Shown piece by piece: positions 940-46,891 of a DNA stretch of 64,000 nucleotides. The DNA comes from Diadema antillarum. Lineage: Eukaryota. The stretch is from contig NW_027271445.1 in the NCBI RefSeq assembly GCF_040938485.1, positions 3,844,001 through 3,908,000 on the forward strand, in the 5' to 3' direction. Position 1 is the stretch's first letter; every line of letters starts with the position of its first letter. Under the pieces are notes generated by a model that was given only the letters and a program-made list of their open reading frames with translations, did no database searches and was not told where the DNA came from. The translations under genes and the position numbers were made by a program.

Positions 940-2095
940 ATGAAGAAACCTCGCGCCAAGAAGAGCCTGCCTCTTCTCGACTCCAGTATGTCTGAGAAAA
1001 AAGGGAGCACATCACGAGGCGCTCAGTCGGCTGGGGCATCCTTGGATGGCAGCAAGAATTCCTTCAAGGAAGAATCAAAGCTTTTGGAGGCATCGAAGCC
1101 TGAACGTGATATCAAGAGACAAATGCGGACATTGACATCGAAACGTCTTGAAGCGACGGAGCCCGGATCTGGAAGACAGATGAAATCCTCAATACTAGAT
1201 TCTAAGGGCAGGGAAAAGGCGACCGCTTCTGAAATGTCATCTGTACTTGCGGAGAGTGCGTCTAGCCCAAAGACACAAAGATCGCTGATGAATTTAGGTG
1301 CCAAGGTAAAGATTCGTGCAGCGACTGTAAAAGACCAGTCTGGTGCATCAAAGAATGATGACGGAGAACATAAAATGAAATCTATATCACGTGATGAGCC
1401 TGACGTGGGTCCCAGTCGGCGACCACGAAAGTTTGACGCAAAGTCAATGACGAAAGGAATATTGGCGAAGGGTTTAGACATTGCATCAAACACAATTATG
1501 CGAGGTGATCGTAGTCCATCCCGATCAACACCAACTCGAACTGACACTTCTGAAAATGCAGAAAATCCAAAAAAGACTGCAGGAGTCAACGCGGCAACCG
1601 CTAGTCCTCTTCTCAATTCCAAGAAGTCGGTTACTCGCGGTAAATCGCTCCTTATCCCAAGTAGGGAAGACAAGTTTGGTAAAATCATAGAACCTGCAGA
1701 TGATGTCGACTCCATCAGTGGAATAGTTTATTCAGAAACGGAGAAGCATAAAAGACCGTCAAAAAAGTCAAAGAAGAAAGAACGAAGTGAATATCTGAAG
1801 CCAAAGGAGGTTCGGAGAAGTCCGAGAATCAAGTCGGCAAACAAAGTGGCAGAAAGATTTGAAGCTGAAGATTCAACCTCAGAATCAGATCAGGAATCCT
1901 GGTACCCAATTAGATCCCAAATGCTTCGTGATATGTACTCTGACAGTGAAAAACGAATGGCGAACTTTGCTGACCCTCTTTATGAATTGAAGAACGTTGA
2001 AGAATTCAGCATTGCAGATTTCGACCTCTTAACCTCATACCCAGATGTTCCAAACTATGCCAGGGAGTTTTCTTCTTCCAGCTACGAGTTATTGG
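940..2095 (+). CDS. Candidate variable first coding exon A (385 codons + 1 nt; Ser/Lys/Glu-rich, disordered)
   Basis: ORF 940-2115. Donor TTG G|GTAGGT at 2096 is phase 1, and a stop follows a few codons into the putative intron. The relic paralogue at 11919 has G|GTAAGT at the same position. Confidence 0.6.
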
Positions 2096-3949: not shown

Positions 3950-4184
3950 ATGTCACTAAGCGCTGAAGTTCTGAACAACCCGATGGTCCGACAGCGGTTT
4001 GGCAGATCCGAGAATCCTGTCTCCCTCAAAGAAGACGGATCTATCCAAATTCGGGAAAACCTGGGAAGGCGTCCTGCGGGGCGTCCTGCGGGGCGTCGTC
4101 CTCACCAAGGCGCCTGGATGATGGTTAAAAACTCCATCCCAACGCTCCGTAGGCTGAGAAATCTCAATCCATTTACCAGTGAGG
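3950..4184 (+). CDS. Candidate variable first coding exon B (78 codons + 1 nt)
   Basis: ORF 3950-4198. Consensus donor GAG G|GTAAGT at 4185, phase 1. Start context CAGGATGTC is identical to exon D, and the upstream block is homologous to the one before exon D. Confidence 0.5.
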
Positions 4185-7559: not shown

Positions 7560-7941
7560 ATGGCGGAAAATGAGTCTGTCAAAGAGTCGGAATACGTCGC
7601 CAAGAGCCACATTCCAAACAGCAGAACGTCTGTCACCAGTACCTATTTAAACTTCGTTCATACTGATACTTCTGATTCCGACTACAGTGATCAGTCCGCG
7701 GACACACGCCTGGCGGAGACTCCAGTCACTGAAGATAATCTAAGTAATCCTACTCCACTCGTGGAGCGGAGCAACGAAAATCATCGTCCACACACTTTTA
7801 AGGGTACAGAAACTGGGGAGAATTCCAGCCGGAATACCCACAAAGGCATAACCACTCCGAAGGCAGATTTGCAGCTATCTAAGTTTTCCCTTTTCTTCGA
7901 TGAATGGAAAGCCAAGAGATCGACGGAAGAACAAGATAAAG
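7560..7941 (+). CDS. Candidate variable first coding exon C (MAENESVK..., 127 codons + 1 nt; in-frame ATG also at 7503)
   Basis: Paralogue of 28692-29139: shared MAENESVK start and LQLSKFS-FDEW--R-TEEQ end. Donor AAA G|GTAGCT at 7942, phase 1. Confidence 0.6.
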
Positions 7942-8805: not shown

Positions 8806-10930
8806 CTCTCTCTCTCTCTCTGTTCTGCCATGGACGTCACTGCCCGTTGGCGATCACTGATGCAGTATGTTTCCGCCATCTCCCTCTATCGTCGCACGAA
8901 TGCAGCAATGTAGATCCTCTCTCGCCGACTAATCCAGCCATTGCAGAAAGGAAAGTGTGTCGCTGTCGTCCACGTGATCTCTTCCCATTCACAAATCCAG
9001 ACAGGACTAGATGCTCTGTTCAGTTTGCCTCTTCCTCACGACATGGCCCAAAAACTGCATCTGGCGTTTCCTGATGGTGGAGAGCAGCTCACGTTCAGCC
9101 GACACCATTTCTAGTACTTCTGTGTTTGATTTTCTTTCCGTCCATGATATTTTCAACATTCGCCTGTAGCACCACATCTCGAAACTTTCTATTCTGTGTC
9201 TCATTGGCTTATTAACTGTCCATGTCTCGGCGCCGTATGTCATAGTTGACCATATGTATGTTTTCAAGAACCGTTTCCTTGTGGCGATGGACAATTTGCG
9301 GTTCGTCATCACCTTGCGCATGTTCTGAAACGCTGTCTTTCCAATGCCAATTCTACGCTTGATTTCTCGTTCTGAACGGCAGTCTGAAGTCAGCAGGCTA
9401 CCGAGGTAATTGAAAGATGACACCTGCTTCAGCTCTTGTCCATTTATCATTATCGAACATCGAGGTGGCTGCGCAGTTTTGCTGAAGACCATGGTTACTG
9501 ATTTCGCGATGTTAATCGATAGCCCCTTTTCCTCGCTTGCTCTGGAGACAACATCCATCAATCCCTGCAACTTCTCTGCACTGTCAGCTAGAATAACCGT
9601 GTCATCAGCGTACCTCATGTTTGTGAGTTGACTGCCTCCGATTGCAAAGCCAGGTAATTCGTCCAATTGTCGCATAATTGACTCTGTGTATAAGTTGAAC
9701 ATGTATGGCGAACCAACACATCCTTGTCGCACACCTCGCTCAATATCCTGCCAATCACCAACATCTCCATCATGCTGTACCGCAGCTGATTGCCTCCAGT
9801 ACAGGTCTGCCAACAACCTTTTATCTTCGTCATCAATGTCTAGCTTGTCGAGTGTCTTGAACAATTCTTCATGTTTAACCTTATCAAACGCCTTCGTGTA
9901 GTCGATAAAACATACATACAGATGTTGCTGCTTCTCTATAGCTCTTTCTGCCAAGCGGCGAATGACGAAGATCGCATTCCGTGTTCCTCTGTCTGGAACA
10001 AATCCATACTGCTGCTGTGAAATCTCATTGCATGTTCGACCTCTTATCCGGTTTATTAGCAAACGAACAAGAATCTTGGTTAGATGGCTCATCAAACTGA
10101 TGGTTCGGTGTTCCTCACATTTGGTAGTTCCTGCTTTCTTCGGTAGAGCAATGAAGATTGATCTACACCAGTCGTCTGGTATATGTCCTTCCCGATATAC
10201 TGCGTTCATCATCTCTGTGACCGTGTCAAGGATTTCGTCTTCTGATGCTTGTAGCATCTCTACCAGTATACCATCCGGTCCTGCAGCCTTTCCGGAAGCG
10301 CTCTTCCATATCGCATTTCTGACCTCATCTTTGGTGAATTCCAGCATCCGACGTTCTCCTGCATTGTCATCCCCATATGTAGGCTGCGGACCTCTATTGT
10401 CAGCGAATAATTGGCCTATGTACTCTCTCCATCTGTCTGATATTGCCGTTTTTTCCATCAAAATTTCACCGCTGTTATCTCGCAGGCAACCGCCGGCAGC
10501 TGACTTTTTCCGCTTTCCAGTCATTTTCTGGATGGAGCTGTGCATGTCGTTATACTTCTTCTCTTCTTCCACTTTCTGGATGTGATCACATTGTGCGTTC
10601 AAAAATTCCTCCTTTGCCCTTCGGCACTCGTATCGCACTTCCCGGTCCAGCTGTTTGTACAACACAGCATCATGGTTTTTTGCTTTTCTTCTCTGATCCA
10701 TTAGTTGAAGGATATCGACAGTCATCCATTTCTGCTTTGCCTGTCTCGGCTGCTCAGGTATTACCTCTTCCGCTGCTTGTACCAAAGCTTCTGTCAGCCT
10801 CATGTTTAATATCTCAGCCTCATCTGATGTCGACTCCCTGTTCAGCAGTTCTCCCACACGCTTTCTATATTGATCAGCTACCGCCGGGTCCGTTCTTAAT
10901 AGATCAAATCGACGTCTTGGCTTTCGTTGC
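8806..10930 (-). mobile_element. 5'-truncated RTE-clade non-LTR retrotransposon (reverse transcriptase)
   Basis: 616-aa ORF 9007-10857 with QYGF...GTRNAIF, FIDYTKAFDKV, GVRQGC, RYADD. A frameshift near 9020 leads into a C-terminal SGFVNGKRSRGRQR...W segment with a stop near 8837. The 3' tail is (GA)n at 8806-8820. No endonuclease domain is present. Confidence 0.92.
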
Positions 10931-11663: not shown

Positions 11664-11919
11664 GATAAAGTCGGCAGAGAGATTCGAAATTGAAGGGTCA
11701 ACCTCAGAATCAGACCAGGAATCCTGGTACTCAGTTACATCCCATATACTTCGTGATATGTACTCTGACAAAAGTGGATGACGAACTTAGCCGACACTCT
11801 TTATGGACTGAAGAAGTTCAAGGTATTCAGCATTGCAGATTTCGACCTCTTATCCTCATACCCAGCGGATGTTCCAAACTATGCCAGGGAGTTATCTTCT
11901 TCCAGCTACGAGTTATTGG
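11664..11919 (+). pseudogene. Relic of exon A (A'): 5'-truncated, frameshifted copy of the 3' end of exon A
   Basis: RIKSAERFEIEGSTSESDQESWY...DVPNYARELSSSSYELLG matches the end of exon A. It has a 4-nt deletion at ~11770 causing a frameshift and stop, and keeps the G|GTAAGT donor at 11920. Confidence 0.75.
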
Positions 11920-12598: not shown

Positions 12599-12988
12599 TT
12601 AAAAGGGATAGTACAGTATTGGTTGAGATGAGAATTGGGGCTTTTAAATTTTTGCAAGATACCAGAAAACACTTATGATATAGCACAGAGCATACCATTT
12701 TAAGAGCATTTCAAAGTTTATTTGATGAAAATCGGGTTTGTAATAACTGAAACATCCAAAGACAAAGTAAAACAAAGCGATCGTTACAAAGTGTGGGTCC
12801 CACACTTTATTAGAATCGCTCTTTTATGGATATCTCAGCCATTTCAAAACCAATTTTTATCAAATAAACATTGAATTTCTCATAGAATTGCATGCTCTTT
12901 CATATTTCGAATGAGATTTCTTATTATCTCACCAAAAATGTTAGAAACCTGAAATTAGGTCTCAACCAGTACTGTACACTCCCTTTAA
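12599..12988. mobile_element. TTAA-flanked MITE with a central palindrome
   Basis: TTAAAAGGGATAGTACAGTATTGGTTGAGA ... TCTCAACCAGTACTGTACACTCCCTTTAA. Central AAAGTGTGGGTCCCACACTTT at 12788-12808. The right half is repeated at 14819-15014. Confidence 0.7.
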
Positions 12989-14399
12989 AACACATCAGCA
13001 TGAAAAAGCAAAAAGCGTTGTTTTTAACCTAAAATATGGATGCCCAAGGCAAAACGAAATTTACTCGGTGTACATGTATTTGCCGTTTATCCCACCTAAT
13101 ATGGACAATTTTGTCAACGACACCGGCGTTACTGTTCCCATGAGATTGCGCAAGTATTCTACTTTTTTAGAAATATGGTTCACTACGTTTTAGAAATATA
13201 CATACTATGGATACGATAATGTAGTTTCCTATTCGAGTTCATTATTTTTTTTCTTACATCCCCTAAAAGAAAATATTTCACAATATAATATTCTATAGAT
13301 TTTTAACCTGTAACATTTCGAACTTTTTTTTTTCATAACGCAGAGCCAATAGGACGGCTGCAGTATTTCATTTAATCATGCGAATGTACTTTCCTTCGTC
13401 ATACAATTTTATATCTATCAAATGGCTTAATGTGACGCCTTATAAACCAGGTCCTGTTGTAAATGTGTGAGGATACATCCTTTTCTTCTCAATGCCGCTT
13501 TCACTTTATTATGTACCTTTCGAATATAGAGAATGCAGATGAAAAATTTTGTTTTTTCGTGAAATGATAGGGGAAAACGTTCTGCAAGCTAGGTCCGTAG
13601 GTCTCTTCCGTTGTTCGCTGGTAAATTTCCTGTTGTGCAGCAGTGATGGAGTCAGCTATAGCTGACAACGAAACCTAATGGTACATTGTTAAACTGGCAA
13701 GACACTCTACGCTTGTAAGCACAACGCGGAACTACAGTAGCGAAGTTGGATTTATGCTTATACTGTACTGTTATATGTAAAACGCGGATGCTTAACTTTG
13801 GATTGTTGGGAATTTTGGGCAAAGTTTGACGAAGAATTTTGTATCTGGTGTGAGCCGATGAGTGCTTGCTCTGCTTTGCGTATATATTCCACTTCACACC
13901 ACATCAAGCTAAGTGAACGTAGAATGGAGAAATTAGCTGTTGACCTATATATATTACTAAAGGACCTATCACATTCATCGTGATAATTAAGTGATGAGAC
14001 GCCTAACGTCAGTGTACGTACATTCGACGTGTGTCTGCACGAGGGAAAGTGGGGCCAATTCTGTCTGTCCTCCAGTCAACGATGTGCGCACAGCGTGGAC
14101 TTTTACAGGAGATGACATTGGAATCAATGATTTAGGTGATATTTTAAGAAACTGTGATTATGTGTGAAGCTTGTTGGTGACTAATGAAAACTCGCAGCAC
14201 ACGGTGTAATCACACTGTCTTTTCCTCTGGTGGTTTTCTTCAGACTCGTGAAACTTGAGGTTTGTCTCTGAGTTGACCTTCCGACTATAGTCATGGTCTT
14301 AAGTACTTGACCGTTCAGTAATTCGCCGAGGAAAAACACTTTTATATTCATCAATCTAGTTCTTTCTCGTCACGGAAAGGGGATTACAAAGAAGACAGG

Positions 14400-14712
14400 A
14401 TGTCTCAAGACAACAGCAAAGTTCGGAAGAACCTAAAAGTAAAAAAACGATTTAGCTTATTCAAGAAACCTATCGCCATAGAAGTCGATGCATCTCCCCC
14501 AAGTCCGAGAAAACTTGAAAAGACGTCCTCCTCACGAAGACGCCACAACACTTTAGACGGTGTCGGAAAACTTCAACCCGACGTACCCCCAGTACCGGAA
14601 AGTCCCCGTCGATTTACCCATGAAGGCACAAGTCCTCGTAAGGAGTCAGAACAAGGAAAACTATCGTTCTCTTTTGATGATGGCGACATTGTAAAAGTAG
14701 CTGTAGAATCAG
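14400..14712 (+). CDS. Candidate variable first coding exon D (MSQDNSK..., 104 codons + 1 nt)
   Basis: ORF 14400-14750. Donor TCA G|GTAAAA at 14713, phase 1. Shares a THEG..SP...SFSFD motif with class C exons. Confidence 0.55.
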
Positions 14713-17700: not shown

Positions 17701-17744
17701 ACAGAAATGTATCTCAATATTAAAACCTTGGTACTTTACCCAAC

Positions 17745-19290: not shown

Positions 19291-19297
19291 AGTGCTA

Positions 19298-25158: not shown

Positions 25159-25477
25159 ATGTCTCAAGACAACAGCAAAGTTCGGAAGAACCCAAAAGTA
25201 AAAAGACTTTTTAGCTTACCGGTATTCAAGAAACCTATCCCCATAGAAGTCGATGTATCTCCCCCTAGTCCGAGAAAACTTGAAAAGACGTCCTCCTCAC
25301 GAAGACGCCACAACACTTTAGACGGTGTCAGAAAACTTCAACCCGACGTACCCCCAGTACCAGAAAGTCCCCGTCGATTTACCCATGAAGGCACAAGTCC
25401 TCGTAAGGAGTCAGAACAAGGAAACCCAACGTTCTCTTTTGATGATGGCGACATTGTAAAAGTAGCTGTAGAATCAG
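25159..25477 (+). CDS. Candidate variable first coding exon D' (recent duplicate of D, 106 codons + 1 nt)
   Basis: ORF 25159-25515. In-frame 6-bp insertion relative to D. Same phase-1 donor at 25478. Confidence 0.55.
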
Positions 25478-32100: not shown

Positions 32101-35100
32101 CAAACGCATATACCGCTGAACCGGGGAAAGAAAAAACCGAAACCGCCGACAATGCTGACCCAGCTTTGTTATCTTCCGATGACAATACTTCTGGTCTTTT
32201 GTCGGCACCACCCGAGATTCTTGCCCGGGGGCCGAGAGCAAAACGCGCCTATGCCGAAGCAGCCCGAGACGGCACGAAGAAGGTTTACCGAACTCGACTT
32301 ATGCTCGTCGGCCAGGAACGAGTTGGGAAGACCAGTCTAAAGAAGTCACTTACAGGTCAAAGGTCGGATACCCTTCACTTCTCTTGGCTCCAAACATATA
32401 AATGCCATCAAACACATCCAGCTCATATTGCAAAAGTCAACTCAAAATATTCAAACTAGATTTTTTTTTTGCATATACAAAGTGAAACTGTAGTTTTTGA
32501 TTGCCATCAATCTGCTGTTTCTGTCCAGTTATTGTACATAGTGCTTGTTGACGATTCATATATACAAATTGTGATTTCATCCGCATTTTGCATTCTCTCC
32601 AATATAGATTCGATGAAAATGAAGCAATTACGGATGGAGTTGAGACTACAAGTGGATGTGATATCAGTATAGAACTCGCAAAGGCTGGTGGGAAGTGGTG
32701 CATTCATCAGAAAAAGGGCACCACTGATGAAGCGAATGGTGAGGAGAACTTATCAACTTTACTCTATGATTTAGTTATTTTTGTCTCGCCACCGTAGCGG
32801 AACCGAGATATAGACGTCACTTTTCAGTCGGCGTCGGCGTCTAACTTTCCACAGCTTTGCGCTATGATCACCAAACCCACACCACATGTACATAACCTAA
32901 AACTGCTGGTCAGGTTCGAATATTGTATGTTAAGTCCGCGCAAGGTCAAAGGTCAAAAGTCAATGAAACTGCTCTGATTTTTAAACAGTATGCACTGCTT
33001 GTATCCACAGAGTTGAGCTATGGCCATCACATTCACACCCCTTGTACATTACCTAAAAACGCTGGTCATAACAAATTTAAAATATAGGTAAAGTCCTATA
33101 TAGTCCTATAGGGGCTCTAGGTCAAAATGTCAATGAACTTTCCCTAATAAGCAGTCGTCTCACAATATTGTGGTGTAGGACCCGGCCCCACTCTCAATAA
33201 ATTTCCACAGCTTTTAGCTATGACCACCAAATTCACACCACAGGTACATCTCCTAATGACGCCGGTGAAGTCCGACAAGGTCAAAGGTCAAATAGTCAAT
33301 GAACTTTACCTGATAGGCAACGTAGGCCTTATACACGTATAGTGGTGTACTCTTGAGAACTTTGTGCAGATTTCAGCTATGACCACCAAATTCAAAGCAC
33401 AGGTACATTACCTGAAGATGTTAGCCAAGTTCGAATGTTCCTGATTTCTGACAAGGTCAGACATCAAAAAGTAATGAACTTTCCGTGATTTAAGCGCCAT
33501 ATGTGTGTTCTCAATAACCGTCCTCAGCTTTGAGCTATGACCACAAAACTCACACCACTTTGCCGTGTTATTTAACGAAATATTGGATAAACAAAACCTT
33601 GAAACTGCCACATGTTCAAATTCCCAGTTCTGTATGCTTTCAAAGAATAATGATATTGCATTTAATCAAAATTATGATGTCATAGTCTCACACGTGAAAC
33701 AATGATCAGTTAGTACCGTAATATACTTTGAGCTGTTTTACATTTTCTCACAGAGGACTCGTACAAGCAGGCTCTGGCTGATGCTATTGCCAAACAACTC
33801 ATCATAGGCTCACTAGAGGTAGGTTGTTTAATGAGAAAAGTATTGAACATGATTTCATAGCCAGTTTATCCAGTTTTTTTTTTTCAGGGTTATTCACCAC
33901 ATAGTAATCATACTGCAAAATTTGTGTGATTTCATTAACCATAAAACATAATTTCTTCATTCACATGCCAAATTTCATTTATATTGCACTTTTTTTCAAC
34001 TAAGATACGTTTGTTGACTCTGTTTACAGAAACAAAACCCACAACAACTGTCTAATTACATACAATCTTTTTAGGCTGCGTTTGTCTAACCTGAAAGAGA
34101 GAATCACCACCCAGTTAACATTTGGACGTTTTCTGTTCTTGAAACGTTCCAATTTCGTTATTTGGACGTTTTGTCAAAATGTTTTCAGAACGTTTTTTGT
34201 GGAAGGTTTTCGACGTATTTGAAACGTTTCAAATCTCTAAAAACGTTATAGACATCAGAAAACCTTTAAAGAATATATAAAATGTTATGAGAACGTTCTG
34301 CGGACGTCAAGAAACCTTGTGAAAACCGTCTATTACGTTCAAAAAAAGAATTTAAGAACGTCTAAAAAGTCTTATGTCCCTTTCCAGAAAATCTAGAGAA
34401 CCTGGCGGCGATGGGGGTTTTCTTGGGCGGTGGACGGGTGGTCTCGTTGTTAAGAACTGGGAACGTTGAGCTAGGGATGTTGTTGATGTGGGGGCCAGTG
34501 TCTTGAGGTGCAGTGTTGTGTCTGTGGATTTCAATGGCTTCTCGGATTCTTCTAGAGTGCCAGTGTGAAATAGATGTGATGAGGTGCCTGCGGTCCCAGT
34601 CGATGCCTTGCACCGCATTGACTGGGACCCACCGCGGTGGTCTTCTCGCTGTGCGTGTTTAACGATGGCTGATTTCTCTCAGTCGTTAAGTTGTTGGCAG
34701 GTCTTGTGTTCTTTGAGTCTCATGTCGAAGTTGCGGTCTGTTTCCCTTGTAAACTTTGTAAACTTTGTAAACTTTGCCCCACTTGCATGGTATGCTGGGT
34801 ACGTCTGGTTGCTTGTTGGATGGGTTCTTGTCCTTGTGGGAGTGAAGAATGGAGTGTAGTTTTTTGGAAGAGCTATGTCTGACTTGGATGTTGGCTGATC
34901 TCAGGATGCGTTGTAGTTGTTGGGGCTGGTGATGGGAGTTTTGTCGGTGGGGGTGCTCTTGGTGGTCTTCTTTGTTAGTGGTTGTGTGAGGATCTTCCGT
35001 TGAGGGTATTGGTTGATGGTAGTGAAAGCGTTGGTGACATGCCTGAGTATCTTGAGTAGATGGTTTTGGCCGCTGAGCTGACAGACTTGGTGTGATGGGA

Positions 35101-38100
35101 AACCGGAGGAAGTCTTCTTGTCGAGGACATGTAGGAACGGGATGGAGTAGTCTTCTTCGACCTCCATGGTGAACTTGATGAGAGGATGCTGTTGGTCGAG
35201 GTTGTTGAGGAACAGATCAGGTTCTGATTGGCTGTGGGGCCAGATGACGAAGGTGTCGTCGATGTAGCGGAGTCATAGGGAAGGACGAGAGGGAGAAGAC
35301 CGGAGAGCTTTGGTTTCGAAATGTTCCATGAAGATGCCGTTCCTTTCAGTTGCTTGTAGTAGTCAGTGCGCCATTTGAAGAAGTTGGAGTTGAGGCAGGT
35401 GAGTATGGGGTCGTGGATTTGATCATGGGTGAGTTTGGTTCGTGTTTGGAGGTTTGGGTCGGAGATGAGTCGTTGTTTGATGATCTCGATTTCTTCGTTG
35501 ACGACGACGCTGGTAAAGAGGGAGACGACATCGAAACTGACTAGTAGGTCGGAGGTTAAAGCAAGATGGCGAGATGTCTTGCTGTGTTGTAGCATGGGGA
35601 TTATCGGGTGGCGATTATGGGTCGAAGTGGAATGAGAGACATGTGTATCTTGGATTGGCCGAAGAGGATGGGGCAAGTTGCGGAGGCAGAGCGGAGTTGG
35701 AAGTAATGTGGTTTGGGTAGAGCGTCGGATCGATGGAGAGAGAGAGTTATAGTTTCTGGTTGATTCAACTTTCTGTTGTAGGGTCTCTCTTAAATTTTCG
35801 AGTAGGTCTTGGCGTTATCAAGTAGGTCTTGAATCTTGCAGTCGTAGTCTTGCTTGTCCATGACGACAGTAGCGTTGCCTTTGTCAGCTTGTAGGATGTG
35901 GATGGTCTTGTTTTGGCGGAGGTCTTTGATGGTTGTGTGTTCTTTATTGGTGCTGTTGGGCTTCGGTGGTTTGGCGTCAAAAAGGGCTTGGGATACTTTG
36001 ATTCGGATGTTGTCGGCGGTTGCCTACGTGAGGAATCGAAGTTTTGGTTCTACTTGTTGGATGATCTCCGAGAAAGGGACTTTCTTTGGAGCTACGGCGA
36101 AGTTCAAGCCCAGGGATAAGACGTTGTGTTCGGTTTCGATGAGCCGATGTTGGCTGAGGTTGATGGCCATGTCCTTGGTTAGTGGGAAGGAAGGTCAGTT
36201 GTTGGTAGGGTGGCTTCTTTGGGTATAATGTTTGTCGAATTTCCTGATCTGCTTGAGTTGGGTGGAATGATAAAGCTTGCATGCGTTGTCTGAGCTGAAT
36301 ATCTTTACTTTTCGTAAGTCGTCTAGTTTGAATTGTTGGGCGAGCTGGGATTGAGACAACGATACGGTTGAGTCGATGGTGTGTAGCTGGTTTCTGGTGT
36401 GTGCGATGCGACGGGTGAGGGCTGCTCCGGCGTGGTGTAGGATGCGCTGGGCTTTGGGGTGTCATTGGACGACTTGAGTTGAATGGGGATGATGTGAGAT
36501 GATGTGAGAGTCTCGGCAGCGTTTGGGGAAGGCGAGATGGTTGGTGAGTTTAGCGGCTTTGGCTCGGTTGCGTTGGAGAAGTCTAGCGGTGCGTTAAGTA
36601 GGCTCCGATCCCCTTAGAGCTGAAATTAGATGATCTTTGAAGGATGGGTTTGAGTGATGGTGTAGATAATGGATAGTGGGTGTGCGGTTAGCCATGTGGT
36701 AATCCTGAAATGAACCGTAGGAAGAAGAGGTAGGAGATTATGAGGACTCCTGAGGACGAACAGTCAAGCTGTCTTTGTACAGTCCTTTTCAGGACTACCA
36801 CATGGTTATCCGCAAATTCAGTATCCGTTAATGACGAAGACGTAGCAGACATAAAACGTTTTGTAACGTCAATTGATGTTTTGAAAACGTTTTCCAAAAA
36901 CCTGTGCCTTGTAACTCCCAACTTTGACGTTATAATGTACGTTTTAAAAACGTCCATTTGATATGGAGACGTATGGAAGGTCACTGAAAAAAAAAAACCA
37001 TTTAGGAAACGTGCTTAAAACGTTATGTGTTTGCTAGGTATAGGATCGTGATTCTGCCTCAGAATTTTTTTAGGTAAACGCACCCTTCGTGACTGCCTCA
37101 CTTTTTCCCCCAGCAATGGGGAAACCCCCGATATATTGATAAGAGTCTGTGGGCATTAATCTGGAGTCTAGTGGAGAGATGTAATTTTTACAGCGTAACA
37201 ATTTGTATTCCTCGCTCTTCAAAATCTCAAGATTTCATAGATTATCTAGGGTGATGAATCACAGTTTCCTCTTCCTCGCCTTTCAGAAAGACCAGCCTGA
37301 GAGCCAAGGACCAGATACTACTGACGGCATCGGTCTCAATCCATCTGAAATGGGTAGGTGTGTCATGGTAGCTTATAGGTTATCATGGTATAGTGGGTAG
37401 GTGTGTCATGGAAGTAAGTAGGTGTGTCATAGTAGTGGGTAGGTGTGCCTCGGTGATGAGTACCGGTAGTTGTGTGTCGGTAGCGGGTAGATCTTTGTCA
37501 GTAGTGGGTAGTTGTGCCTCACTAGTGAGGAGGTGTGTCACGGTAGTGGATAAGTGTGTCTGTTTATTGTGCGTATGTGTCTTGTTTGAGGATCTGGTGT
37601 CTCGTTGTTGGGTAGATGTGTCTTGGTAGTAGGTAGGTGTGTCTAGCTAAGAATATGGCTAGAATCAACGGGTCTCTTGGGACAGTGGGATCAGTATCAG
37701 ACTCATTGTACCTTGTGGGGATGTCGACCGTGGTAGTAAAACGATCATCACAAGCAAAATGAGAATTTGTTGTTTTTGGGAGGGAGTATGTATAAATATA
37801 GGACAACTAATTTGAAGTGCCTTTCACACGATGTTCCCATAGAGTCTCTTGTGGGTCCCTCCCCTTCATCGGGCGCCGCGTCACCTTCCATCGAGCCATC
37901 CATGCCACAGCAGATCGCCAGCCTGGTGGAGAGAATGCTGAAGGAACAGGTGCGGCTGAAGCAATGCGGGGCAGTGGGCGGGGCAGTGGGCGGTGCCAAT
38001 CCTGACTCTTCATCAGCTGGAGAGGTCTCTTTGAGTATATGGGACTTCGCTGGGCACGATGTCTATTACACAACCCACCAGGTTGGTTTATTGATATCGA

Positions 38101-41100
38101 TAAAATCTTTAGCAGAACTGCATGTATATGGAATTCTTGCTGATTATTGTGTCATTAGCCTTGTAACTTGTTGTGTACTATTATTTTTTTTTATTTTCTT
38201 ACCACAATGGATGATCACGAGGATTGGATAAATGTGTAAAATTGAAGAAAATGAGTCCTATGGAGGGATGTCGAATGAGTAAATGAAGTAAAGATGTGAA
38301 CACACTACCATATCTCGTAAAACAAACAGCCAAAGAAATCATTTAGATCGTTAAATTTCTAAAAGTCCGGATTCGGAAAAGGCTCCCTGCTCTTACGACT
38401 TAACAAGATTAAAAACCCGTAATGCTCCAAGTCATCCTAATAGATCAGGGCACAGCAAGAAATTATCTTAACGTTTTTTGTCAGGTTACGATTTCCATTG
38501 GACTGTTTATTTGTTTCTTCTTGGCTCCGGCAAGTGAACGATGTCTTAATTTCCTTTGATTTCCACATTGTAGTGTTTTTCTGACACACAAAACTTACAA
38601 TATCCTTTTCTGAAGATGATACCAGTGACTATAAACGGGATTTGCCTTCGATGTGGAAAGTAGAAAGTGGCACGAGTATCTTGCAACCATTAAAGCGCAG
38701 TAAGGACTTAGAAAGTGGATACTTCTTTTTGAAACTGTTGTCCTTTACAATAGCAGAATATGTAGACTATTGTTGATTTGTTTCTCTTTGTGTTTCTATC
38801 AGGTATTTTTGTCATGGCGTGCAGTCTACGTCGTGGTCTTTGATCTGAGTCACGACCTTCACTCGGTAGTCCCACCTGAGGCTAGAGACGAAATCTACGA
38901 AATGGTGGGCGATCACAATTTGAAATCTCCTGTCTCGTAAGAAATGTTTTGATTGAAATAATGAAGAAACGATATAAGGCATTGATTGACATATTGTATG
39001 AACACGAAATACGATTCTATTGATCTTTGTTTCTCAGGCCAAACAGAATTCGAAGTCTGAGCTGACATGTCTTCAATTCATCACGTTCTGGCTGAACTCC
39101 ATCTTCGCTCACGCTGTAGCACCCTCTTCGGTTACCAAAAACAGTACTTGCAAGACGCACCAGAAATCACCCCCTATATTCATCGTGGGGACACACAAAC
39201 AAAGTCTAAGCGGAGATGCCAAGGCAAGAGAGAAAAAGGTTAGAAAAAAGTTTCTATTTATATCTTGTCGTCGCCCTAAAGCGAATGTTTCATAAAAGAC
39301 CACAGATTTTTATCTCGCATTTTCTTTTTAGTAAAAACTACACATTCCTTAAACTTGTTTAAGGATGATTTCATTTCTTCTGCATTCTAAAGAAGTCATG
39401 ACGAGGGTGTTTGTTGTGTTGAAGGGTTAACCATGTTCTTCGAGTGCACGTACAGGAGAGTGAATATCAATTAGTTCCGCTCTTCTAGCGGAGCGCCCCT
39501 CCGCAGCGTCTCCGATCGTTGCCGATGGGTCGTCATCGTTCTCTGCAAGGTTGTTTGGATTTCTCGGAGACGTTACGGACAAAGTTTAGTCTCCGCGACG
39601 TGGCCATAACTGAGGACACGTCACAGAGACGTCGCAGAGACCAGCGACTGTTGGAAAGTAGAAAATGTGTCCGAAAAAAAAATAGATGTGTTCGATTCTC
39701 CCGAGACTCCCCGCAGACCAAGCTAGTCTCCAGGAAGACGTCTCCTCAACGAACGGAGACCTGACTCACCACCAGGTTGCCGCCTCGTCTCCATGCCAAT
39801 AAGTTACCCATTTGACTTTCTGCATCGTCCCATATTATGAGATTAAAATGTTATTTTGCTTCTATGTTCAAAGTGACTATGATATAAAAAGTGAACTCTA
39901 ATAAACACATTTGCAAAGTTTCTTGATTTCTTGTATATTATGTGTTGCCAGGTGGAAGCCGCCTTCAAGGATATCCGGAAGACGATACAGAAGAAGCCGT
40001 ACGAGAATCACGTGGTACCTCGCTACTACGCTGTAGACAATAGTCTCGGGGAGGATGATAAGGAGGTGGGAATAAACTCTAACCCTGACCCTAACCCTAG
40101 CACTGATAATCTATCATTAACCAACGAACGCGTTATAAAGACAGGGGGACACAGACGAGTGAATAATGCTATTAATTTGAATTCTGTCTAAAATTAGAAA
40201 GGGGCTATTGAGAGGCATTTTGGTACACATTTTTGTGTGTACTTTTGTGCTTTTAAACAGTAATGCCCTATTTTTCTGCAAGAAAAGCTGACAAGTCTAA
40301 GGCACCATTGCACATCACACATCACATATATGATATTATAAGATGGACTTTAGAATCTCTGCAATCTGATTGGTCAGATATCATGCATTGATTTTGTACT
40401 GATGCACTCTGAGCCATGCGTCCGGTAGAATCCGACCGCATGGCCGTGCGCGACCGGTAATATCCGAAAGCAGGGCTTAAGCCTTGTACAGTGTTGTAGG
40501 TGTACCGGACGCATGATGGGGGAAAAAGATTGAATTTCATGAATTTTATGGACCCATTTTATAACACAAATGACACACAGGTCTATTTCGTAGATCGGTG
40601 AGAATTGGATGCTCTCGTCTAACTTTAGAAACATTCTAATGCCCAATCTCTGCGCTCGTGGGTTTAAACAGTTCCAAAATTAAACTCTCGCATCCAGTTA
40701 TCAACGATCGACTCTGTCCTGTGCATCATTTACAACAAACACTATTAAGTCCTGAAATTGTGTTTAACAACATTTACGATTGATGGCGGCTGCGAATTTA
40801 TTGTGTTGTAGATGTACCAAGTCTTCGATCCCACAAGCCACCGGTTCTAACACAGAATGTTATCATAACATGTGAATCTTTTGTGAATTCCCAGATCGTT
40901 GCTCTGCGGGAACACATAGAGCGAGTGGCAAAGGAAGAGCCGTACATGGGTGAGAACATGCCGATTAAATATCTTCTCTTCGAAGAGGCTCTCGCGGTCA
41001 ACAAAATCAACTTCTTGTCCCTCGATCAGGTATGCTAGGGTTATGCTGCTGCTCTTCACTATCCAGTTTTCTTAAGCTCAAGAGTAGCTCTTGACTCTCA

Positions 41101-44100
41101 ACACAATCCGGTAATATTGAGTAGCCCCGGACAATCTTACCACACGTGTTTTCCTAAATTCATCGCTATCCCAAACCTCTTACTTCCATAATCCTGTACT
41201 ATCCGGAATCCCGTTGAAACCGCATCCCCGGTATACTCTCTGTAGACCCGGGAATGTCATTCCGTGTTCCCACCGTTGTGTACTTGTCCTGCGAGTTATT
41301 GAGGTGTGAGAAGTAAATTGAAGACATTTTTTTGAAATTAATATGATGTATCGGAGAAATTGATAGTTTTGCTGATATCTTGTTAACCCTTTCTGTGCCA
41401 AGGTGTTCGGACGGTTTGCACACCGCTGTGAGTTTTTTCTCTGCTACCCCGGGCACTCAGACCACACAAAGAGTTTGGGGAAAGCGATGTACCATTTTGT
41501 TTCTTCCAACAAATTACTTAGTCTTGTCAGTATTGTGCTGATAATTCTTCTTCTTTTCCCGACAGGTTAAAGATATGATGCGGAAAGTTGGTACATACAG
41601 TGACCAAGAGCTAGTCACCATGCTCCATTTCTACCACGACCTCGGCTTTATTGTCTACTTCGGTGAGGTGGAGACGGAGGACGAGGAGGAGGAGGAGAGT
41701 CACCTACGAGACATCGTCATCCTCAACCCACAGTGGCTCATCGACGTCTTCAAACAGGTCATCACTGTACTGGAACCAGCCAAGAGAGTAAGAGTTATGG
41801 GTTCCATTTTTTCCATTAAGTGCTTCCATTTAAAGGTCAAAGTGCAAAGCGATTGCAGCGTAATGGCGTGTGTCCACCCGATGAGAATAAATGATAATAC
41901 GTTCAAGATAGAATGGGTCTACTTCCAATGAAGCCGATCCAAAAACTCAACTTGTCAGGATGATCTTTGCATACACTTTGCTAACTACTGTAATTCATTC
42001 AATTTATCTTTTAAGTTACTTCTCTTTGTTGTTATTTGTTCTTTCTATTTTGATATTAAAGTGACAGATGTTCATGGCAATTGTACTCGAACTGTGCATG
42101 TTAGCCAGTGTTAGCAAGTGATGGGGTTCAGTCAGATGAATTGTGCTTTGATGCAGATTTCATAGGCATCACATCGTAATCTTAGATATTCAAATGAAAT
42201 GTATCCCTTGGTGTTGTCGGGATATTTAGGATGGCATTGTGAGCGATGCTTGGACCAAGCTCGAGCAAGACGGAGTGCTTGAAGAGCGTCTTATCCATCA
42301 CATGTGGGAGGGATTCCTGGAGCAGAAGGGCGCCCTCGTACAGCTCATGGCAAAGTTTGACCTCATCTGCGAAGCCCCGCCCCTAAAACCCGAGAGTACA
42401 ATGAGCGATGGAGAGGAAACAATGGTAAGTCATCAAGTAACAGAAATACGGCGTGCTTGTGGCAAGACTGGGGGGAGGGGGGCGTTGTAATCAAGTTGCG
42501 ATCAATATTGCAAAACCACAAAATCAAAGGTGTAAGTCTAGAGATTAATTGCAAATTGCTGATTCATTGTTTTGCAAGAAAAGGTTACGCTCGATCAAAT
42601 GCAAGTCTTGTTATCACTTGCAAATAAAGGGCAAACTTTATAAGATAAATTTAGGGTAGTGTGCAAATGTGTATATCATTTACTTTTATTTGTCTCTCAT
42701 CTTTATTTCAACGCCATATTGCCATGACGTCATAGTGAATAGACCACGGGAGTACTTTTTGGAAAATTGCGTGTTGCGTAACTTTCCTCTGGTCTCACTT
42801 ATATCGCAGACTTAGATTTACCAGGGGAGAACCGCGCCTTTATCGCAGCAAAGTGGTTTATCTTGTGCCTGTTTAAATTGTCTTTAGAAATGAGGGAATA
42901 TGTTTTTTTATTGGTTGGACAATGAGAGTTCTTTTCATCATATTTTCATCAGCGCCCTCTACGTTCACTACTGTTGTACTCACAGGAAGATCGTCCTGTC
43001 ATGAAGCAGTACTACGTCCCATCCAGACTAACACCGTCTTGCTCGCGAGAGGACATCGGGCAAATTGACAAGAAGTCGTCGTTGGAATTTTACGTGGATT
43101 TTCGTGGTTTCTTACCGGGTATGTTCCCAAATTCCCCAGGCTGAAATAACAACCGAAATAAAGATTTTAAAGAGGCCCTTTTGTTCTTTTAACTGAATTT
43201 CTCAGTTTGAGACATTCTAGTATGTGTGAAAGGGAGCTTCAAAACAAGCTCCGTGGTTATTCTTTAACATTAAAAATAGTTTAAACTCATTGAAACAGAA
43301 CAGTGGAAGGGTTCATGGAAATTGGATATAGAATTAAATATAAAGGAATTTTCAATATTTCTCTCAAAGCACTATCCTGTTACCTACTTGCATTTTCAAA
43401 TTTTAGGTCATGACGTCATAACCTCTCATATCTGTTATGTTATTACCATGTCATTTTATTGGTGATTTGAACAATTTGTAAACAAGCAATTTTGTAACTC
43501 TGTCGTCTTTTTGTGTGTCATGAAGATGGCTTGTTTCATCGTCTAATGACGCGCACTGTGCGATGGATTGACGATGAGGGCGGGGAGCCAGTTCTTTTGT
43601 TTTACCGCCAAATCAGTCTGATGCCAGACGACGTTCATCAGGTTTTACTTGAAATGCTGCCACCTCATGAAGCTGCCATCAAGGTAAATATTGTCAGAGA
43701 CTGGATGAGAGTATTAAGAATATCGCTTGCCTTAGACTAATAGTCATTCTATTTTACTGAATGAAAAATGTGTAGTAAAATAGCTGCAATCTGGAAGAGT
43801 TAAAGGGGAAATCAAGTCCGAATATAAGTTAATCTAATAAGAAACGGTAAAATATTACGAATTCAACGGTATAATTTTGATTGAAATCATATGGAAAATT
43901 AGAAAGGCAGTGGCGGATCGGGGGGGGGGGGGGCGCAACCGGGGTATGCCGGTTTGTAAAAAGAAAAGAAAAGAAAAGAAAAGAAATGAAACCTGAAGTG
44001 GGACCAGAAATATTAGTTGCACCCTCCCCCCTTTACAAAATTCCTGGATCCGCCCTTGGAAGTCATAACATTTTGAAGTTTTTCCAATTTTTCGGGAAAC

Positions 44101-46891
44101 AGTTCTTGAGCAGTCAATTTGAATATGCAAACGGCAAAATTAGAATGTCATCCCTTACAACTTGCCATACACACATAGTTTTTTACATGAAATCTTGACA
44201 TTTCTAATTTTTCATTCAAACGCAATTATGCCAAGGCTCAAATCCTTGTATATATAACTGATCACTATTCTGAAGTTATTCAACAAGGAGTAACACCATG
44301 TTTTAGATTTCAATGAAAGAAACATTGAATTTTGCCTTTTTTTTTTTTGGTACACGATCAATGACCAAAATTGGTTATGATTGGTTATGGTTAGATGTTA
44401 TGACATGGTAAGCTCACTCATGTGCATATTAATAACCACTGTACAAGAACTCTTTTGTAGAAATTAGCAAAACTTCAAAATGTCATAACTTCCTGATTTC
44501 TTATCCGAATCCAGTCAAATTTCTACTGTTAAGATTTTACCCTATTAATCAGACTAACTTATATTTTGACAGGATCTCCTTTTTTGAATTCTCTCTAGGA
44601 ATCTCGGGTCTTTAAGTGTATCAGACTTGGCAGTATGAACATAGTAATCAAACCCACATAATATAAGGAGCCCAGTCCCGGTAGCACTACGTAACATGAC
44701 ACACTGTGCAACTTCCCTACAGATCATTGTCTTTAGAGCTGACATTGCAGACCCGGAAGACGATGCAGGCGTGAGTCACGTGACTGATCCTCCCAAACCC
44801 GATGTTGTGAAAAGGGTAAGTTAAGGTGATATCACTGATTATAGTAAAGATAATAATGACATCAAAATAATAATGCTGCTGAAAAAATTAGTTAAAACGC
44901 TCTTTCTTGGAAATAGAGTTTATTAGCCTTCTTCAGATAGGGGATAGCTACAACATGTCATATATTGATAACCTCCTTAGTTATACAGTTCGTTTTTTTC
45001 TCAAGAAAGAGACGCCACCACATAGGTTATATTACGTTAAACATTGAGTCAACATTATACGATTACAACTGAATGCGATGCTATCTGCTCTTCCAATAAG
45101 TTTGAATGATAAGTTCACTTCAATTGTTTGGGTCAATTCTTCACGTTGATTTGACTGGTTCCACCTCAACCGTATTACACACGCACAAAACTCACCTTAA
45201 ACGAACGTTTCGAGTTCACCGTCACTGAACACTTCTCTCGTACAGGTCATGACCTTTCTAACCGACACACTGGCCAGTATCCGTCGTCAGATGGCTAAGA
45301 GAATCCAGTATGATGTATGTTTTGCCTGCCCAAAGTGCGGCAAGAAGAAGACGTTTAAAGAGGGAAGTAAGAAGCGGAGTTTGAGATGTGGTATGCACGT
45401 CATTCCAGTAGCCTCCGTCTGGTCCAAGTTCGGTGAGAAAAATGTGACTCATTCACTCCATGAGCTAGTTGACTTGAATACGATTAATGTGTGTAGCCAA
45501 ACAAACCAAAATGAAATATTACCCTGTATAGAGATTTTATCGACTTATGGATTTTCATATGACCATGCTTTGGAATGTTTCCATTGCATTTCCCTCCTCT
45601 TCTACCTTGAAGTAATCTGTGAGAGAGGACTATGTTAAAGTTGAAATCACCTTTTTTGTTCTTTCTTCATTTCAACATTTTTACTGCGCTTGTGGCTTTC
45701 ATTATTGGTACTGTTGCTATAACTGCTTTACTGCTGTTTAAAAATATTCAGTCTGAGATTTCAACAGACGGGAGAGAAGCATATCGTTTGATTAACCATC
45801 TTGATAACCACGTTTCACTCACTCCCAAATTCCCTACGTAACAATGTTTGTACTTCATGTCTTCTAGGTATGGAACACTCTGGGGCGGTCGTAGGGAGTG
45901 AGAGCCCTCTCGTCTGCAGGAAGAAGAAAGGTACGTTACCTTCACATTATTAGTTGCTATGGTAACGTTTACTTCACTATCTTCTTGTGGAAATGAATGA
46001 TGACGAGAAAGTTCCAGTCATTTACGTATTGACAAAATGTCATGTTTGATAACCAGCTCGATCCAACTGAATATTGAGGTAGAATAAAACTATATAGTGC
46101 TGGAAATGAAATCAACAAACCAATCCCTTACATTTTGTATCTTTAATTCAAATGACTTTATTGTGTCATTACAGCAGCACTGTATCATTGACGGAAAAGT
46201 GTTATGCAATGAATCAGGTTTGAATAGTTTAGCTAATAGGACAGAGACAACTTCTTCCAGAGAAATTGCTACAATGTGAGAAGTGAATCATGCTTTGGTA
46301 CGAAGGACGCATTTCTTCTATGCCAAAATTTTGCAAAGAGATAGCAAGGCTCTGGGATGCGTCACCTGACTAGATGACTTAATTGATTTATGGAAAGTAC
46401 CAAACACATGGAAACACCATAAGAGCAGATCCTACTCTGTGTTTTTTTAATTCTTGTCTTACATGCAATCTGGGAATATTGCAGTCTTCGACCACTTCCA
46501 ACCAATATCAGTCTTTTGTGATTGTTTGCAAATAATGTTACGCCGTGACATCTTCAATCTATTCACAACTGAATCTTTTCTCTTCGCTCGCTTTCCTCCT
46601 GCCTTCCTAGACGTTCTCTGTGAGATGTACTTCAGTGACCTTGCGGAGAAGATTGGCTCTGAGTGGAAGACCCTTGCCTTGAAGTTGGGCCTCAAGAAGG
46701 CTGATCTTGACCACATTACCGAGGAGCATCACGTACCCGTCGATCGCATATTCACTGTGCTGCACACCTGGCGCGAGAGGGCGTCGTGTAGTAACAAGAA
46801 GGAACGGATCGCTGAGCTATGCAAGGGACTTTGTGATTGTGGGCGAACGGACTTATCGGATCGTGTCAAGGAGGATGCAGGAATCAGCTAA
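28692..46891 (+). CDS. ROCO-family protein (disordered N-terminus - Roc GTPase - COR - death domain), 18-exon model, ~1032 aa using the most proximal first exon
   Basis: Hand-spliced join(28692-29139,32098-32362,32608-32738,33754-33818,37287-37353,37843-38081,38803-38904,39038-39238,39952-40065,40895-41029,41566-41787,42230-42424,42986-43118,43526-43683,44723-44815,45246-45432,45868-45930,46611-46891) = 3099 nt. All introns are GT-AG, phases are consistent and there is no internal stop. Roc motifs: GQERVGKTS, ITDGV, WDFAGHDVYYTTHQ, PPIFIVGTHK. COR motifs: LHFYHDLGFIVYF, VILNPQWLIDVF, YYVPSRL. The last exon encodes a death-domain pattern. Confidence 0.88.
29261..29591. mobile_element. MITE inserted in a (TA)n tract
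   Basis: Ends AGACCGATTC / GAATCGGTTT. Internal inverted repeat GGTGTCTCAGCCGACCCCCC / GGGGGGTCGGCTGAGACACC. Confidence 0.65.
29593..29792. mobile_element. Palindromic MITE
   Basis: ATACTCTA...CGAGTGAAAATATTCACTCTTAAAGGAGTGAATAC, with the inverse copy ending ...TAGAGTAT. Confidence 0.7.
30703..30990. mobile_element. MITE
   Basis: 33-bp perfect inverted repeat GAAGAGTTTGTTTGCAAAAACCGATAAGTCCAT at 30727-30759 and 30941-30973. Confidence 0.65.
32098..32362 (+). CDS. ROCO constant exon 2: Roc N-terminus and P-loop (APPEILARG...RLMLVGQERVGKTSLKKSLTG)
   Basis: TTCACAG| acceptor (phase 1), AG|GTCGG donor, GxxxxGKT P-loop. Confidence 0.9.
32608..32738 (+). CDS. ROCO exon 3: Roc switch I (FDENEAITDGVE)
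   Basis: AATATAG| acceptor and |GTGAGG donor, phase 2 to 1. Confidence 0.85.
32778..33620 (+). repeat. HINE-like/tandem-unit interspersed repeat in ROCO intron 3
   Basis: Starts TTTTTGTCTCGCC...CGGCGTCGGCGTC. About five ~150-bp units contain AGCTATGACCACCAAA...GTACAT...AAGGTCAAAGGTCAA. Confidence 0.45.
33754..33818 (+). CDS. ROCO exon 4 (EDSYKQALADAIAKQLIIGSLE)
   Basis: TTTTCTCACAG| acceptor and |GTAGGT donor, phase 1 to 0. Confidence 0.75.
34110..37038. repeat. AAACGTT-rich MITE-like host element interrupted by the Penelope-like element
   Basis: AACGTT-rich sequence on both sides (34110-34369 and 36830-37038). Imperfect TIR CCCAGTTAACA / TGTTTGCTAGG. Confidence 0.45.
34370..36830 (-). mobile_element. 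Decayed Penelope-like retroelement (RT + GIY-YIG) in ROCO intron 4
   Basis: Minus-strand frames give LTNHLAF..RCR (N-terminus, ATG at ~36695), LVSFDVVSLFTSV, LRYIDDTFVIWPH, IKFTMEVE...IPFL, a GIY-YIG remnant (IPCKWGKVY...RLKEHK) and RRIREAIEI. There are many frameshifts. Confidence 0.88.
37287..37353 (+). CDS. ROCO exon 5 (KDQPESQGPDTTDGIGLNPSEM)
   Basis: Pyrimidine tract plus TTTCAG| acceptor, |GTAGGT donor, phase 0 to 1. Confidence 0.7.
37350..37640 (+). repeat. ~21-bp GT-rich minisatellite starting at the exon 5 donor
   Basis: Repeated GTAGTGGGTAGGTGTGTCATG-like units. Confidence 0.8.
37843..38081 (+). CDS. ROCO exon 6: Roc G3 (LSIWDFAGHDVYYTTHQ)
   Basis: CCCATAG| acceptor, CAG|GTTGGT donor, Roc signature WDFAG..YY.THQ. 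Confidence 0.9.
38803..38904 (+). CDS. ROCO exon 7 (VFLSWRAVYVVVFDLS)
   Basis: CTATCAG| acceptor, ATG|GTGGGC donor, typical Roc beta strand. Confidence 0.85.
39038..39238 (+). CDS. ROCO exon 8: Roc G4 (FWLNSI...PPIFIVGTHK)
   Basis: TTCTCAG| acceptor, AAG|GTTAG donor. Confidence 0.88.
39952..40065 (+). CDS. ROCO exon 9 (...YYAVDNS, Roc G5 region)
   Basis: GCCAG| acceptor, GAG|GTGGGA donor, phase 0 to 0. Confidence 0.85.
40895..41029 (+). CDS. ROCO exon 10: Roc-COR junction (IVALREHI...YMGENMPIKYLLFEEAL)
   Basis: TCCCAG| acceptor, CAG|GTATG donor. Confidence 0.85.
41566..41787 (+). CDS. ROCO exon 11: COR-A (LHFYHDLGFIVYF...VILNPQWLIDVF)
   Basis: Strong pyrimidine tract acceptor, AGA|GTAAGA donor, COR signature. 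Confidence 0.9.
42230..42424 (+). CDS. ROCO exon 12: COR (GVLEERLIHHMW...LMAKFDLIC)
   Basis: ATTTAG| acceptor, ATG|GTAAGT donor. Confidence 0.85.
42986..43118 (+). CDS. ROCO exon 13: COR (YYVPSRL...FYVDFRGFLP)
   Basis: CTCACAG| acceptor, G|GTATG donor, phase 0 to 1. Confidence 0.85.
43526..43683 (+). CDS. ROCO exon 14: COR-B (DGLFHRLMTRTVRW)
   Basis: GAAG| acceptor (phase 1), AAG|GTAAAT donor. FLP/DGLFHRL is continuous across the junction. Confidence 0.82.
44723..44815 (+). CDS. ROCO exon 15
   Basis: CCCTACAG| acceptor, AGG|GTAAGT donor, 31 open codons. Confidence 0.72.
45246..45432 (+). CDS. ROCO exon 16: end of COR with CxCxxC...CxxH knuckle
   Basis: GTACAG| acceptor, G|GTGAG donor, sequence VCFACPKC...LRCGMH. 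Confidence 0.8.
45868..45930 (+). CDS. ROCO exon 17 (linker)
   Basis: TTCTAG| acceptor, AAG|GTACG donor, phase 1 to 1. Confidence 0.68.
46611..46891 (+). CDS. ROCO terminal exon 18: death domain, stop at 46889-46891
   Basis: Long pyrimidine tract TTCCTAG|. LAEKIGSEWKTLALKLGL...IFTVLHTWRER...LCDCGRTDL matches the death-fold pattern. Confidence 0.88.

Follow-up and report, generated by a model that had tools for sequence, protein, structure and literature searches.

A Roc-COR-death-domain gene of Diadema antillarum with an array of candidate alternative first exons

ROCO-death-domain genes are expanded in echinoderms, and the sea urchin Diadema antillarum has a locus of this kind. The locus lies on contig JBFRCO010000557.1 of assembly GCA_040938485.1, and the stretch of DNA analysed here (the window) comprises 64,000 nucleotides without any N. 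A preliminary description proposed that six ATG-initiated exons at the left side of the window are alternatives feeding one Roc-COR-death-domain constant region, in the manner of clustered protocadherin and UGT1 loci. With a probability of roughly 0.7, we read the locus as one ROCO-death-domain gene with a duplicated array of alternative first exons, of which some are used and others are decaying. The features discussed below are collected in Table 1.

Table 1. Features of the D. antillarum locus and of its sea urchin orthologues. Positions are those of the window unless a locus is named; negative positions lie upstream of the window, and window position equals L001 position minus 11319, L001 being the extended 68-kb D. 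antillarum locus. L003 and L004 are the S. purpuratus and L. variegatus loci. Slashes mark splice sites.
Feature	Position	Strand	Description
Distal ORF	-8988..-8526 (L001 2331-2793; exon -8880..-8526)	+	donor CTG/GTAAGT, phase 1
A0	about -4710..-3878		dead A-type copy
D''	L001 8627-8947		dead D-type copy, upstream of window; frameshift, donor lost
X3 exon	-1318..-1213 (L001 10001-10106)	+	106 nt, 3n+1; donor CAG/GTGAGT, phase 1
Exon A	940..2095	+	intact, 385 codons + 1 nt, K/S/E-rich; donor TGG/GTAGGT
Exon B	3950..4184	+	decayed D-type copy; donor AGG/GTAAGT
Exon C	7560..7941	+	intact, 127 codons; old paralogue of C'
LINE-type insertion	8807..10926	-	between unit 2 and unit 3
A-relic	11664..11919	+	dead A-type 3' fragment; donor TGG/GTAAGT still present
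Tandem duplication R-D-R	12792..15967	+	repeat 12792-13950 = 14818-15967, 1.16 kb, 98%, around D block
Exon D	14400..14712	+	intact, 104 codons; donor CAG/GTAAAA
8.7-kb insert	15973..24717	.	between second R and D'; missing from D. setosum locus
Exon D'	25159..25477	+	95% copy of D
Exon C'	28518..29139	+	first coding exon of X1/X2; conserved start MAENESVK at 28692
Constant exon 1	32098..32362	+	acceptor cag/AT; junction codon G/AT = Asp
Constant exons 2-6	32608-32738, 33754-33818, 37287-37353, 37843-38081, 38803-38904	+
Constant exons 7-11	39038-39238, 39952-40065, 40895-41029, 41566-41787, 42230-42424	+
Constant exons 12-17	42986-43118, 43526-43683, 44723-44815, 45246-45432, 45868-45930, 46611-46891	+
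RefSeq isoform X1			1090 aa; XP_071500460.1 (P0269); 100% match to window
RefSeq isoform X2			1056 aa (P0151); 100% match to window
RefSeq isoform X3			918 aa (P0270)
RefSeq 815-aa product			two further D. antillarum records
S. purpuratus X1	L003 21151-22288		long exon
S. purpuratus X2	L003 10001-10381, 14481-14756, 15128-15295		three exons
L. variegatus X1	L004 21992-about 23371		exon
L. variegatus X2-X4	L004 10001-10423 and 18641-18937		distal module

The constant body and its gene models

The window contains a multi-exon, rightwards-transcribed gene whose exons match the Roc, COR-A and Death families of Pfam, and no second gene is called in the 68-kb locus. Spliced reconstruction of RefSeq isoform X1 is exact, with 18 exons (the first at 28518-29139) and GT-AG boundaries at all introns. 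The constant part accounts for 17 of these exons (32098 to 46891; 2651 nt); constant exon 1 terminates in the Roc P-loop GQERVGKTS and exons 2-17 (32608..46891) encode Roc, COR-A, COR-B and the Death domain. In X1 the Roc match (PF08477, E 5.9e-15) is split by an insert; both the P-loop and the switch II motif WDFAG can be read in the sequence; COR-A (PF16095, E 7.4e-17) follows directly C-terminal of Roc, COR-B (PF25497) is weak (E 2.5e-4, under the gathering score), and the Death domain (PF00531, E 1.5e-12) occupies residues 1003-1085, encoded by the last exon. Pfam searches of X1 give no kinase, LRR, ankyrin or TIR domain. With Roc, COR and Death all present, the predicted product is a ROCO protein with a death domain.

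The canonical G4 motif for guanine specificity is N/T-K-x-D, with THxD at this position in LRRK2. The G4 position of the urchin Roc domain, in the exon at 39038-39238 (given as constant exon 8), reads VGTHKQS and has no Asp; other urchins have THRE or THRA. Guanine specificity may be altered in this urchin subfamily.

Two junctions onto the constant part are annotated. The first, from 29139 to 32098, is present in both X1 and X2. The second joins the X3 exon, which lies upstream of the window, to 32098; this exon and the 17 constant exons reproduce the 918-aa X3 product exactly in a spliced reconstruction. The annotated X3 intron is ~33 kb long and skips all six of the exons first described, which is the expected behaviour if those exons lack an acceptor. 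Because two RefSeq variants encode the same 815-aa product, some 5' exons are non-coding. The RefSeq start of X1 and X2 lies 58 codons 5' of the MAENESVK start, and the resulting extension (MILSIFSKSFYTRR...; window 28518-28691) has a non-coding appearance; it may be 5' UTR that was annotated as CDS.

Upstream exons and the shared acceptor

The six exons (A, B, C, D, D' and C') are present where they were first placed, with lengths of 1156, 235, 382, 313, 319 and 448 nt, all 3n+1, and each terminates G/GT in phase 1 as read from the sequence. The acceptor at 32098 is cag/AT and is the one used in the RefSeq models. Joined in silico to the 17 constant exons, the six give open proteins of 1268, 961, 1010, 987, 989 and 1032 aa, and with X1 mapped to the window there are no Roc, COR or DD exons 5' of 32098. 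The array moreover reaches past the window, upstream of which lie at least two further exons in phase 1. Direct splicing to the first constant exon is compatible with phase and open frame in all, and is annotated only for C' and the X3 exon. The proposal of a variable/constant locus stands in its core, several phase-matched ATG first exons preceding one Roc-COR-DD acceptor, and is supported by the two modelled junctions (C' and the X3 exon), by the two-start isoforms of two other urchin genera and by the signs of coding constraint on C as well as C'. It is weakened in three respects: A, B, C, D and D' are used by no gene model in either Diadema species and by no RNA-derived sequence found; B is decayed, and D' is a near-identical recent copy of D that D. 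setosum lacks; and the common phase is inherited.

The six exon donors score 5.0-10.2 bits, compared with 4.3-10.5 bits for 16 annotated constant-exon donors; the C' donor, known to be in use, is the weakest of the six (~5.0 bits) and that of B is the strongest (10.2 bits). A phase-1 donor of at least 5 bits near the ORF end is found in 7 of 18 upstream plus-strand ATG-ORFs of at least 75 codons (8 of 18 if C', just below the 5-bit cut-off, is counted), against 2 of 24 ORFs on control strands and in control regions. However, two of the seven donor-bearing ORFs (at 22702 and 27977) are plain chance ORFs, and phase alone is for this reason weak evidence for any one exon.

The orthologous genes of two other urchins account for the common phase in another way. 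S. purpuratus LOC752124 (XP_001176471.3, X1; XP_030845158.1, X2) and L. variegatus LOC121420992 (XP_041471493-96, X1-X4) encode the same Roc-COR-DD body with 59-62% identity, and each has two alternative 5' modules. In S. purpuratus both modules terminate G/GT in phase 1 and join ag/AT to give Asp; in L. variegatus the last exon of the distal module ends G/GT, the constant acceptor is ag/AT, and Asp follows both modules. The junction G/AT is the same in S. purpuratus, L. variegatus and Diadema, which makes the phase they have in common ancestral. Every gene that has alternative first exons needs such a phase, which is no independent evidence for each copy. The preliminary description had argued that the shared phase was not simply inherited from one recent copy, the exons falling into four largely unrelated classes. 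The phase was, however, inherited from an ancestral gene with two first exons and then multiplied by tandem duplication, and the classes reduce to an A-type and related C and D types, B being a degraded D-type copy and C/C' and D/D' having the common motif R-x-T-H-E-G..SP[KR]..SFSFD[DE].

In both orthologues one of the modules consists of a long exon, rich in K and S, that carries DEPDxGPTR motifs in the manner of exon A. They differ from the Diadema gene in that the modules are single copies, the distal module has several exons, and there are no A/D/C triplet units. Exon A resembles the X1 long exon in length, composition and position, although the only sequence in common is DEPDxGP[ST]R (E 0.007 for S. 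purpuratus and 0.037 for L. variegatus); uncorrected tblastn E-values overstated the match, and after correction this one motif is left. The RefSeq models of both Diadema species have probably overlooked an A-type isoform like the one that is annotated in Strongylocentrotus and Lytechinus. Judged by eye, the X3 exon is similar to S. purpuratus X1 where the exon ends in ...KPSKLPSVVRQLST..., and it is tentatively read as a further, truncated A-type copy of which the 3' part is left.

The distal ORF upstream of the window contains the motif PLFVLD[DE]VR of the first exon of S. purpuratus X2 (here PLFVLDEVR; E 3e-5, composition-corrected), a motif also present in the distal first exon of L. variegatus, and its exon, joined in silico, would read through into the constant part. 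The ORF is unannotated, precedes constant exon 1 by ~41 kb and probably represents the distal first exon of the ancestral gene. The C- and D-type tails give no significant match to the X2 module of S. purpuratus or L. variegatus (PRFKSEGYRPRP motif) once composition is corrected for.

The distal module of L. variegatus varies in a manner of its own. At L004 10001-13010 the distal first exon exists in two partial tandem copies of 1.29 kb, and what distinguishes X2, X3 and X4 is a 37-aa unit with PRFKSEGYRPRP, of which there are one, two or three. The number of 37-aa units reads as a different way to vary the same N-terminal tail.

The variable tails consist of 72-78% disorder-promoting residues, are of low complexity and evolve fast, with only short motifs kept; no Pfam domain is found in the variable exons. 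Searches for small-protein homologues of the upstream ORFs, with exon D as query, gave none. Searches for RNA-derived protein fragments over the junctions, with exon D and constant exons 1-3 as queries, yielded no Diadema fragment, visibility in these searches being limited by the length window and database content. No 9-mer in the 800 nt upstream is common to three or more exon classes, and no common promoter element was found across classes.

Duplication and decay of the array

Self-comparison of the extended locus reveals about three colinear tandem units of A-, D- and C-type exons. Unit 1 lies upstream of the window and holds A0 (dead), D'' (dead) and the X3 exon; unit 2 holds A, B and C; and in unit 3 are the A-relic, D together with D', and C'. 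The colinear pairings are A0/D'' with A/B, A/C with A-relic/C', and D'' with D/D'. The amplification is placed on the Diadema side, because S. purpuratus has single copies of each module.

Synteny in a related species, proposed earlier as a check, is found in D. setosum for most of the array: C, the A-relic, D and C' are colinear, in the same order and 96-98% identical, with the C, D and C' ORFs intact, but D' is missing. Divergence between the two species is 1-4%, and the exons, including C', which is in use, change as fast as their flanks, so that a constraint test between D. antillarum and D. setosum has no power. Downstream of the array the relationship is different. Past the C' intron (window 29261-47400) identity to the D. 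setosum gene (L002) is 75-90%, and two further tandem paralogues on the same D. setosum chromosome (L005 and L006) show a mosaic of 76-93%. No strict orthologue of the constant body, above ~93%, is found among these three tandem paralogues (L002, L005, L006). The difference between 96-98% identity in the array and a mosaic 75-93% in the body suggests that the body was exchanged or gene-converted among paralogues in one lineage.

The relic noted in the preliminary description is a copy of the 3' end of exon A (87% identical to 1843-2113) and is interrupted by in-frame stops in D. antillarum and D. setosum alike. Exon A is intact while its sisters A0 and the A-relic have decayed; neutral survival of its ORF is estimated at 4.5% at d=0.065 and 0.25% at d=0.13, both upper bounds.

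The C-type exons are an old pair. The blocks around C (6615-8387) and C' (27685-30361) run colinear with an identity of 66-77%, and flank distance is ~0.26-0.38 substitutions per site. At a divergence of ~0.36 per site the MAENESVK start, the open frame and the donor have been retained in C and in C'. There are six gaps between these exons, each a multiple of 3 (6, 18, 9, 18, 33, 6), against 6 of 18 in the flanks; six in-frame indels by chance have P of about (1/3)^6. The dN/dS ratio is ~0.49, and neutral survival of the exon C ORF is ~10% at half the C/C' distance, counting substitutions only. Low neutral survival together with in-frame indels argues that C as well as C' stayed coding, as far as can be read from the sequence, although exon C has lost the Glu of the HEG motif.

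Exon B aligns over its full length with D, D' and D'', with indels of -1, -2 and -2; its middle is out of the D-family frame, and the ancestral donor is gone. Its present donor arose by a 2-bp deletion in conserved FT[HS]EG codons, and the same deletion creates a stop 4 codons on. Exon B is most plausibly a pseudo-exon whose strong donor arose by chance, although this donor may conceivably be in use. Exon D has a single orthologous copy in D. setosum, with an intact ORF there. The D block (13958-14818) and the D' block (24717-25583) are 95% identical, with a dN/dS of ~0.9 between D and D'. Heterozygosity in urchins is of the same order as the difference between D and D', and D' is for this reason possibly a haplotype assembled in tandem, or else a recent D. 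antillarum-specific duplicate of D. The possibility that D-type exons are transposon ORFs within LTR-like repeats was considered and rejected: D. setosum has R-D without the second R, flanking sequence is colinear from one unit to the next, and multicopy matches to proteins were not found.

Several inserts interrupt the array. The LINE-type insertion carries an intact minus-strand reverse-transcriptase ORF of 616 codons (9007-10857; RVT_1, Pfam E 3.6e-38) and is judged recent because it is missing from the orthologous D. setosum site. The 8.7-kb insert contains arrays of 158-160-bp satellites in opposite orientations (16025-16805, 21558-21925 and 23347-24655) and a fold-back element (16812-21557, with 16812-19049 inverted relative to 19321-21557) that has satellite arrays on both sides. 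Within the constant region, intron 4 includes a 3.7-kb block (window 34000-37700) with a positive GC skew of +0.29 to +0.35 and long ORFs on both strands. The other long ORFs of introns and inserts, those of the intron 4 block included, have no Pfam match.

How many first exons are used, and comparison with known systems

On the reading preferred here, the upstream ATG exons would lack a usable 3' splice site and end in a phase-1 G/GT, so that whichever exon starts the transcript would be joined to the first downstream acceptor, ag/AT at 32098, with formation of an Asp codon. Transcription would begin from separate promoters; with no acceptor in between, 32098 would be the partner of whichever donor belongs to the starting exon. 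The ancestral echinoid design was two alternative 5' modules spliced onto the same junction, and in the Diadema lineage the 5' region was tandemly duplicated into its units of A-, D- and C-type exons. At present C' and the truncated A-type exon of X3 are in use in the gene models, and B, the A-relic and the two upstream copies are dead; A, C and D are intact and probably or possibly in use. The predicted products would be identical in their GTPase-COR-DD body and vary in the N-terminal tail alone, which is short, of low complexity and probably disordered; such tails may be regulatory or targeting segments. The basic R-R-x-[ST] sites in the tails hint, speculatively, at phosphorylation.

A larger role for the array can be put forward only tentatively: out of an ancestral two-promoter gene Diadema would have made a growing birth-and-death locus in the style of protocadherin and UGT1, in which at least four coding first exons are functional (A, C, D and C', and in addition the distal and X3 exons). 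Each of them would give the same GTPase-DD signalling body another short-motif tail, in an invertebrate gene family that is a candidate for immune or cell-death roles. Somewhat doubtful too is that only C' and the upstream X3 exon are functional, and that A, C, D and D' are silent by-products of duplication that have yet to acquire a stop. This would fit an array in which half of the copies (B, A-relic, A0, D'') are demonstrably dead, no model uses A, C, D or D' and no RNA-derived fragment is found by a search of limited reach; it would also fit exons that evolve like their flanks between Diadema species, the high dN/dS of D/D', and the missing Glu in exon C. It leaves unexplained, however, that C and C' have kept ATG, ORF and donor and 6 of 6 indels in frame over ~0.36 substitutions per site, that a 385-codon ORF in exon A has a neutral survival since the duplications of at most 0.25-4.5%, and that one intact A-type and one intact D-type exon have each outlasted two dead sisters.

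It is improbable that all six exons, B included, form a regulated protocadherin/UGT1-like set with their own promoters, providing a repertoire of immune or cell-death N-termini. The six open in-frame proteins, the acceptable donors (strongest in B) and the long-range splicing across the array annotated in X3 are what such a set would give, but B is frameshifted relative to its family and owes its donor to a deletion, D and D' are 95% identical with D' missing in D. setosum, and the short tails evolve fast, are of low complexity and contain no recognisable domain, nor was a common promoter element found. That the upstream ORFs belong instead to other transcription units, as small genes or exons spliced elsewhere, is very improbable, since no other gene is called in the locus, they have no Pfam domain or small-protein homologue, they are paralogues of the annotated C' and X3 exons, and the first in-phase acceptor downstream of them is 32098.

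Use of several of the first exons would make the locus a compact natural case of alternative-promoter arrays born by duplication and pruned by decay, with live, dying and dead copies side by side. It would also suggest that the regulation or targeting of these GTPases resides in the N-terminal tail and acts through motifs such as RRxTHEG, SFSFD[DE] and DEPDxGPxR. Should use be confined to the annotated exons, the gene is an ordinary one with two promoters, amid duplication debris.

Alternative promoters are commonplace, and tandem coding first exons with shared constant exons are a known architecture. In clustered protocadherins (alpha/gamma) and UGT1A, tandem ATG first exons with a 5' splice site only are spliced, past the variable exons that follow, to shared constant exons; the variable exons encode a large folded functional domain and have a defined promoter element, and their usage has been shown experimentally. 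The urchin locus is similar in its tandem paralogous ATG first exons and its history of duplication and pseudogenisation. It differs in that the variable parts are low-complexity tails of 35-385 aa without a folded domain, and the array is small and half decayed, with 2 of ~8 copies annotated as used. Human DAPK1 is a kinase-ankyrin-Roc-COR-DD protein; the urchin protein shares with it Roc-COR followed by a C-terminal death domain, but has no kinase, ankyrin or LRR domain.

The preliminary description knew of no such arrangement in a ROCO gene. This holds for the animal literature, in which no paper on an alternative-first-exon array in a ROCO gene was found, although a layout with two starts is already present in RefSeq for this gene and its orthologues. 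The nearest system is that of the brown-algal LRR-ROC-COR genes, proposed immune receptors with exon shuffling and alternative splicing (PMC11378527). As in the urchin gene, variation of the N-terminal part comes from exon duplication together with alternative transcripts, whereas the variable units there are internal LRR cassette exons and the proteins have no death domain (PMC11378527). New in Diadema is an amplification specific to this lineage, in which live, dying and dead copies coexist, together with A-, C- and D-type isoforms that are likely to exist unannotated.
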